64,000 nucleotides of DNA from Macrostomum lignano (taxonomy: Eukaryota). A model generated the notes under the pieces. The model was not told the DNA's origin. It did no database searches and saw nothing but the letters and a program-made list of their open reading frames with translations. This document shows positions 32,370-32,585 of the stretch, piece by piece; position 1 is the stretch's first letter, and each line of letters opens with the position of its first letter. A program made the translations under genes and the position numbers. The stretch covers positions 1-64,000 of the forward strand of contig NIVC01003468.1 in the NCBI GenBank assembly GCA_002269645.1. The letters run 5' to 3'.

Positions 32370-32585
32370 ATGGTTTGCTATGTACGCCTTGTCGTGGTGC
32401 TTCTCCTCGCACAGATTCTACTGACGCAGGCTGTCACAAGTTCAGGCCTCAACAATGGCACTCGCGTCAGAAACAAACGATTCTACTGCCTGGGCCGGCA
32501 CGAGCGGTGCGCCTACAGCAGGGACTGCTGCAGCCGGAATTGCCTGATGCTGCTGGGCTTCGTTGGCATCTGCATCCCTCGTTGA
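32370..32585 (+). CDS. Secreted knottin / conotoxin-like (inhibitor cystine knot) prepropeptide, 71 aa
   Basis: Signal peptide, short propeptide ending RNKR, 34-aa mature peptide with C-X6-C-X5-CC-X3-C-X9-C framework; host-like GC-rich codons. Confidence 0.8.
   Translation: MVCYVRLVVVLLLAQILLTQAVTSSGLNNGTRVRNKRFYCLGRHERCAYSRDCCSRNCLMLLGFVGICIPR

Follow-up and report, generated by a model that had tools for sequence, protein, structure and literature searches.

Architecture of the predicted precursor

We analysed the first 64,000 nucleotides of contig NIVC01003468.1 of the flatworm Macrostomum lignano (assembly GCA_002269645.1), hereafter the window, in which a short open reading frame (ORF) appears to encode the precursor of a secreted peptide with the cysteine framework of inhibitor cystine knots (ICK; knottins). 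The ORF listing for the window contains, at 32370..32585 on the forward strand and with 71 amino acids, exactly the frame and sequence that an earlier note on this DNA had described as a conotoxin-like prepropeptide. The precursor is made up of the following elements.

32346..32348, forward strand: in-frame upstream TGA, 24 nucleotides before the ATG, read from the sequence
32370..32585, forward strand: coding sequence of the precursor, 71 amino acids, including the TGA stop at 32583-32585; supported by the ORF listing, the GC island and the codon score
32370..32432, forward strand: putative signal peptide, amino acids 1-21 (MVCYVRLVVVLLLAQILLTQA), with a hydrophobic core and T/A at -3/-1; cleavage position predicted
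32433..32480, forward strand: putative propeptide, amino acids 22-37 (VTSSGLNNGTRVRNKR), read from the sequence; processing presumed
32454-32462, forward strand: NGT sequon in the propeptide
32469-32480, forward strand: R-N-K-R proprotein-convertase motif, R34-N-K-R37, directly before F38
32481..32582, forward strand: predicted mature peptide of 34 amino acids, residues 38-71, framework C-6-C-5-CC-3-C-9-C

Because of the in-frame TGA at 32346, the ATG at 32370 is the first possible start of the frame, and neither a frameshift nor an internal stop interrupts the 71 codons. The signal peptide was called by a rule-based reading of n-, h- and c-regions with small residues at -3 and -1. By these rules the N-terminus has the properties of a signal peptide, with R6 in the n-region, an h-region (LVVVLLLAQILL) of mean Kyte-Doolittle hydropathy 3.13, and T-Q-A before V22. 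The propeptide is polar and ends in an R-X-K/R-R site that adjoins the mature domain; since furin-type convertases are specific for R-X-K/R-R, the propeptide would presumably be removed there. In the mature part, cysteines at positions 3, 10, 16, 17, 21 and 31 leave loops of 6, 5, 0, 3 and 9 residues, so that six cysteines in a C-C-CC-C-C arrangement with loop lengths in the known range give the knottin framework. The same 34 residues contain five Arg, one His and two acidic residues, and the final cysteine loop is hydrophobic (Kyte-Doolittle 2.64). The prepropeptide anatomy that the earlier note had laid out (signal, propeptide, RNKR site and 34-residue mature part) was thus borne out by reading the sequence, as was its remark that the last loop is hydrophobic.

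Coding signal and chance expectation

The coding sequence is a GC island (57% GC; 69% GC at third codon positions, GC3) between flanks of 30-34% GC, and the island coincides with the ORF. Neighbouring exons have a GC content of 64-70%, and a GC island in AT-rich flanks is the exon signature of this genome. We scored codon usage with a log-likelihood measure trained on 973 codons from neighbouring exons. The peptide frame gave +8 to +10 bits per 70 codons and was the only one of the six frames with a positive score, the other five ranging from -23 to -51; true exons reached +19 to +27 bits per 70 codons in leave-one-out tests. When compared with other ATG-initiated ORFs of 55-130 codons outside exons, the mariner transposon (described below) and tandem repeats, the peptide ORF ranked second of 53, with one of the 52 others scoring higher (57870-58205), and only 0.1% of random ORFs with the composition of the island reached its score. 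This evidence from codon usage is largely independent of the motif by which the ORF was picked. Two ORFs that overlap the peptide frame, 32375-32629 (+) and 32442-32627 (-), were rejected for their strongly negative coding scores. The higher-ranking frame at 57870-58205 (+) is a 112-codon ORF that is absent from the gene listing and has the top codon score of the small ORFs (+28.8 bits per 70 codons); the locus gene tables show an RGS-plus-kinase (GRK-like) gene next to it, of which it probably forms an exon.

By itself, the cysteine framework is within chance expectation. Composition-matched block-shuffled windows contained the bare framework 0.79 times per window, and 0.11-0.19 times per shuffled window when it had to lie inside an ATG ORF of 45-130 amino acids. 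We then took the full layout to be an ATG-initiated ORF whose N-terminus is signal-like, which has a basic site at most 12 residues before the first cysteine and which carries exactly six cysteines within the last 45 residues. No instance was found in 300 dinucleotide-shuffled windows, in 1,500 Markov-resampled windows or in 20,000 shuffles of the island, and in the real window and three related loci the peptide ORF is the only one of its kind. A product estimate puts the full layout at about 8e-5 per window, which corresponds to about one per genome of 764 Mb (PMC5730564). As one accidental instance or so is therefore expected in the genome, the layout motif by itself does not settle the matter; taken together, the rarity of the layout and the codon usage make a purely accidental ORF unlikely.

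Predicted fold and family membership

Structure prediction with AlphaFold2 (AF2) of the mature 34-mer alone gave a best model with a mean predicted local distance difference test (pLDDT) score of 89.0, in which 25 of the 34 residues were at or above 90 and strands 19-24 and 28-33 form a hairpin. A Foldseek search of this model against the PDB returned 21 matches at E<=10, nearly all of them ICK structures, with query TM-scores (TMq) of 0.57-0.76 and root-mean-square deviations (rmsd) of 1.8-3.8 A. The neighbours come from sea anemone, remipede, spider, scorpion and cone snail and include Tst2, xibalbin, psalmotoxin, imperatoxin A, palutoxin, DkTx, atracotoxin, poecitoxin and conotoxin SrXIA. 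Against viral models the search found baculovirus Ctl peptides, with TMq 0.72-0.73 and rmsd 1.5-1.6 A over 32 columns. Members of the ICK class have the disulfide connectivity I-IV, II-V, III-VI, in which the third bond passes through the ring; the mature sequence is predicted to be compatible with this fold and would be expected to adopt the same pattern.

Family profiles placed the peptide near the knottin toxins and outside each of them. No Pfam toxin family reached its cut-off, and the scores fell far short of it: PF02950 Conotoxin (9.0 bits, cut-off 25.1), PF08087 Toxin_18 of the conotoxin O-superfamily (9.3, cut-off 24.3), PF08099 scorpion calcine (14.7, cut-off 25), PF06357 omega-atracotoxin (14.0, cut-off 22), PF08088 conotoxin I-superfamily (12.5, cut-off 23.2) and PF08093 Magi-5 (11.2, cut-off 22.2). 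The sub-threshold matches in Pfam and among PDB sequences were to ICK families, the best PDB sequence match having E = 0.069. A match to DUF4400 (E = 0.0018; 18.3 bits, cut-off 27) covers hydrophobic stretches, lies below its cut-off and was regarded as spurious. We conclude that in framework, and probably in fold, the peptide is like the knottin toxins, and that it belongs to no curated family. The likeness to conotoxins and spider knottins drawn in the earlier note therefore stands for the C-C-CC-C-C framework and the ICK neighbours of the predicted fold, and falls for membership of the O-superfamily or any other curated toxin family, given the Pfam scores and the lack of a homologue. Of the checks that the note had proposed, structure prediction gave ICK neighbours for the best model, with no significant E-value among them, and the search for paralogues by tblastn found none in the window or the three related loci. 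A verbatim literature search for the peptide found none, and in the open-access literature we found no report of an ICK peptide from Macrostomum or other flatworms.

Weighing the alternatives

We put the probability that the ORF is a functional, lineage-restricted, single-exon M. lignano gene for a secreted knottin peptide at about 55%. The alternatives are best judged with the following further features of the locus at hand.

30712..32060, reverse strand: complete mariner/Mos1-type transposon, 310 nucleotides upstream of the ATG, with terminal inverted repeats (TIRs), TA flanks and HTH_48 and Transposase_1 domains
32246..32252, forward strand: TATA-like TATATAT, 124 nucleotides upstream of the ATG, a candidate core promoter suggested by pattern scan
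32356..32361, forward strand: CCTCAG acceptor-like site, 8 nucleotides before the ATG, agreeing with the trans-splice motif at five of six positions
32631..32632: sharp breakpoint of collinearity with contig NIVC01001391.1, 46 nucleotides past the stop codon

Several observations weigh against a functional gene. The peptide is a complete orphan: a word-index protein search gave no candidate, an exhaustive phmmer search of 1.84 billion cluster representatives gave no match at E<=1e-3, viral and JGI metagenome contigs held no relative, and tblastn and a framework scan found no paralogue in the window and the three related loci. Because no homologue or paralogue was found, purifying selection cannot be shown. 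The coding score is about half that of neighbouring exons, and GC3 is lower than theirs. When the full precursor was predicted from its single sequence, pLDDT was 53.5, with a helix at residues 2-24 and a C-terminal hairpin; for the mature part, the remaining four of the five AF2 models had pLDDT values of 51-69. None of the Foldseek matches was significant (E of at least 0.56 throughout the PDB, 0.5-2 for viral models), and the cysteine framework alone may have steered both AF2 and the toxin hidden Markov models toward knottins. At the DNA level, the mariner occupies the putative promoter region, and the first canonical AATAAA lies 376 nucleotides past the stop. The locus gene table has no gene at the ORF (24417-24632 of locus L002), and the gene collection has no record of the exact 71-residue product. 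Finally, the sister contig shows no copy of the peptide in the 1.36 kb next to the corresponding position.

The GenBank annotation is based on transcripts and TransDecoder, and non-coding and repeat-overlapping transcripts were removed from it (PMC5730564). Under such a pipeline a missing annotation is expected for a 71-codon ORF and is uninformative, in keeping with the suggestion, made before this analysis, that so small a gene is easily missed. The sister contig NIVC01001391.1 is about 98% identical to 32632-56584 of the window. Beyond the breakpoint, in the region 24886-26247 of its locus, L001, it continues for 1,358 nucleotides that have no match in the window and contain no cysteine-rich ORF, namely about 650 nucleotides of unique, AT-rich sequence that end in ...CTCTACA, and then a 27-nucleotide minisatellite. 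The ...CTCTACA end could be the CA end of a long terminal repeat (LTR), and the breakpoint itself could mark an insertion in the sister contig, a presence/absence difference or assembly chimerism. The M. lignano genome comprises three subgenomes, which diverge by 1.4-2.4% in single-nucleotide polymorphisms and by about 36% once long insertions, frequent between them, are included; chimeric scaffolds make up 36% of the assembly length (PMC10733133). The missing sister copy can therefore be read in any of these three ways. An older paralogous locus has different neighbours and likewise no copy of the peptide.

Of the alternatives, the one that survives best is that the frame is non-functional, an accidental or proto-gene ORF in a GC-rich patch that is untranslated or has no selected function, and that owes its knottin look solely to six TGC codons at permissive spacing. 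We regard this as possible, if unlikely. A framework that arises about 0.8 times per shuffled window, a layout expected by motif about once per 764-Mb genome, the orphan status of the peptide, the missing annotation, the missing copy beside the sister-contig breakpoint and a GC3 below that of real exons are all what it would predict, and GC-rich patches without ORFs do occur nearby, for example at about 30380-30530. Set against it are a codon score that is positive in the peptide frame only and is attained by so few composition-matched random ORFs, the joint occurrence of signal, basic site and six C-terminal cysteines, which was seen in none of the 1,800 shuffled windows, and the confident ICK-like AF2 model of the mature part.

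It is improbable that the 71 residues are not the true product and that the frame is instead an exon of a larger gene, or the decaying remnant of a longer or duplicated one. An acceptor-like CAG shortly before the ATG, the end of sister-contig collinearity so close to the stop, and the frequency of chimeric scaffolds and long subgenome insertions noted above would fit such an origin. However, an in-frame stop lies just upstream and the signal peptide begins at Met1, the stop codon follows soon after the sixth cysteine (...CIPR-stop), the frame is intact, and the flanks hold no coding-like ORFs. The acceptor-like site also differs at one of six positions from the M. lignano trans-splice acceptor motif, [T/C]TNCAG (PMC8629364). 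If a spliced leader were joined at CCTCAG, its 3'-terminal ATG would be out of frame with the peptide and would open a 21-codon upstream ORF, so that trans-splicing at this site is doubtful.

The mariner lies between the 5' end of a PAM gene (see below) and the peptide ORF. Its TIRs of 31 nucleotides (30712-30742 and 32030-32060) are 97% complementary, and its transposase is frameshifted into an HTH_48 ORF (31543-31878) and a DDE ORF with the Transposase_1 domain (30812-31600). The 15-nucleotide exact direct repeat GCATGCAGCTTCGAT occurs within the transposase at 30920-30934 and again at 32600-32614, 15 nucleotides past the peptide stop; its score of 30 lies inside the shuffle range (maximum 35; z ~3.6), as does that of a TIR-like 14/16 match just before the ATG. 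That the ORF is cargo or debris from a mobile element or from foreign DNA, viral or bacterial, is very improbable and we reject it: the complete mariner nearby, the repeat that it shares with the 3' flank of the ORF, a breakpoint as sharp as an insertion edge and the structurally similar Ctl peptides of baculoviruses invite the idea, but the ORF lies outside the TIRs and the TA duplication, is itself flanked by no terminal repeats, has no relatives among viral or JGI metagenome contigs and shows the codon usage of host exons, and the short matches are of the kind that shuffling produces.

A more specific form of the favoured explanation holds that this is the first cystine-knot peptide gene of the Platyhelminthes and a young orphan of the Macrostomum lineage, arisen de novo or by convergence and present in one of the three subgenomes. 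We regard this version as rather doubtful.

Proposed role and comparison with known peptides

The proposal of a functional knottin gene is based on the ORF and its layout, on codon usage like that of coding sequence and on compatibility with an ICK fold, and from these we infer the transcription of the gene and the secretion, cleavage, disulfide pattern and target of its product. The 71-residue product would enter the secretory pathway by means of its N-terminal signal peptide, which would be removed near Ala21, and a furin-type convertase would cut after RNKR37. The freed, net-cationic peptide of 34 residues would then fold as a three-disulfide ICK scaffold that exposes a hydrophobic beta-hairpin, LMLLGFVGI, ringed by arginines. 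Such a hydrophobic, Arg-ringed surface is typical of membrane-partitioning, channel-binding knottins and of knottin-type antimicrobials. Most likely the peptide would act outside the body's cells, as an effector that epidermal or gland cells release and that partitions into the membranes of other organisms (microbes or small antagonists) or binds a membrane channel or receptor of theirs. We know of no venom apparatus in M. lignano. The animal is kept on unicellular diatoms (PMC7053086), and for these two reasons we favour extracellular defence over prey capture, a role that had also been suggested for the peptide and that now appears unlikely. Defence is the most likely function by our inference; the peptide may instead have an antimicrobial, reproductive-secretion, signalling or endogenous-ligand role.

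The ICK peptides of venoms (omega-atracotoxin/hexatoxin-1 type, calcines, and O- and I-superfamily conotoxins) share with the flatworm peptide the six-cysteine C-C-CC-C-C framework and the plan of signal, propeptide, basic site and mature part, and they are the nearest PDB neighbours of its predicted hairpin fold. In an omega-atracotoxin PDB chain, loops 1-3 (6, 5 and 3 residues) have the same lengths and align with the flatworm peptide without gaps. In contrast to these families, the flatworm gene has an unrelated signal peptide, scores below the profile cut-offs and is single-copy rather than one of a multigene family, and its host is fed on diatoms.

The closest biological analogues, alike in precursor logic and framework, are the CRP-I peptides of Mytilus. 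These are secreted, non-venom precursors with a signal, a propeptide, a dibasic KR/RR site and one C-C-CC-C-C array; the array is encoded in exon 4, signal and propeptide regions are conserved, and the genes occur in large clusters and vary markedly in presence/absence between haplotypes (PMC10138031). Both CRP-I, which is lophotrochozoan, and the flatworm peptide share the precursor plan and the cysteine array, and the presence/absence variation between Mytilus haplotypes could parallel the missing copy beside the sister-contig breakpoint. The flatworm gene nevertheless falls outside CRP-I, since it is one uninterrupted ORF with no paralogue in the window or the related loci and no sequence match to the family.

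The Ctl peptides of baculoviruses are, like the flatworm peptide, small secreted six-cysteine peptides, and the predicted structures superpose. Their identity to it is 28-38%, probably owing largely to the shared cysteines, and no sequence match was found in viral contigs; unlike Ctl, the flatworm ORF resembles its host in codon usage and flanks. Unlike M. lignano, nemerteans are proboscis-bearing predators. ICK toxins occur in these soft-bodied spiralian worms (reviewed in PMC10674772), and we liken them to the flatworm product by peptide type only, the exhaustive protein search having given no match.

Knottins are among the most widely reused secreted scaffolds of animals, in which they serve as toxins, antimicrobials and hormone-like ligands, and transgenesis, RNA interference and in situ hybridisation are routine in M. 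lignano. A validated flatworm knottin would widen the known distribution of the scaffold and provide a new bioactive peptide in a tractable model, and it would show that annotations based on transcripts and TransDecoder miss this class of gene. If the gene is specific to a subgenome, it would bear on the gain and loss of such genes after genome duplication; as a young orphan in one subgenome, it would be a tractable case for the birth and the presence/absence dynamics of a toxin-like or defence peptide. Should no transcript exist, the locus would be a warning against trusting the convincing look of a short cysteine-rich ORF.

Neighbouring genes and repeats

The nearest gene upstream of the mariner, at 22500-29005 on the reverse strand, is of the PAM type (bifunctional peptidylglycine alpha-amidating monooxygenase, PHM plus PAL). 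Three of its exons were assigned.

28406-29005, reverse strand: PAM exon with Cu2_monooxygen and its own signal peptide
25017-25673, reverse strand: PAM exon with Cu2_monoox_C
23488-24135, reverse strand: PAM exon with NHL

When the first exon served as query, word-index searching gave no protein at E<=1e-10; the annotation may therefore lack the PAM gene or model it wrongly. A 24-nucleotide minisatellite (27877-28358) adjoins this exon. A functional link between the peptide and the adjacent amidating enzyme was rejected: the precursor ends with CIPR and a stop and has no C-terminal Gly, so amidation is not expected and the adjacency is probably coincidental.

Further upstream, a C-type lectin is encoded by a single ORF at 19879-20697 (+), with a Lectin_C match at E = 8.9e-7 and a signal peptide that begins at the internal ATG 19930; the gene collection has no entry for its exact product. 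At 3737-5910 (+), a 428-residue ORF with a weak, double-jelly-roll-like match to PF21738 (E = 7.6e-5, below cut-off) is followed by a 296-residue ORF without family match, and the pair may be the remnant of a virus-like or Polinton-like element.

On the other side of the peptide ORF lies an RNF144-like RBR E3 ligase gene (42160-47001, reverse strand), with exons at 46330-47001, 45331-45426 and 42160-42570. The intact RBR/IBR ORF at 45721-46995 (-) matches a Macrostomum lignano protein with 100% identity, and one intron of the gene holds a 46-nucleotide minisatellite of 59 copies (42601-45281). An RBR paralogue that is 90% identical lies on NIVC01002457.1 among other neighbours, including a PP1-type phosphatase.

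The window as a whole is dense in minisatellites, with 56 rows in the Tandem Repeats Finder (TRF) output and arrays of up to 4.3 kb, among them a 36-nucleotide unit in 121 copies at 8810-13106, a 40-nucleotide unit in 45 copies at 37752-39539 and a 63-nucleotide unit in 39 copies at 60008-62446. Many of the long ORFs that run through all frames, such as that at 32980-34173, are translated minisatellite arrays.
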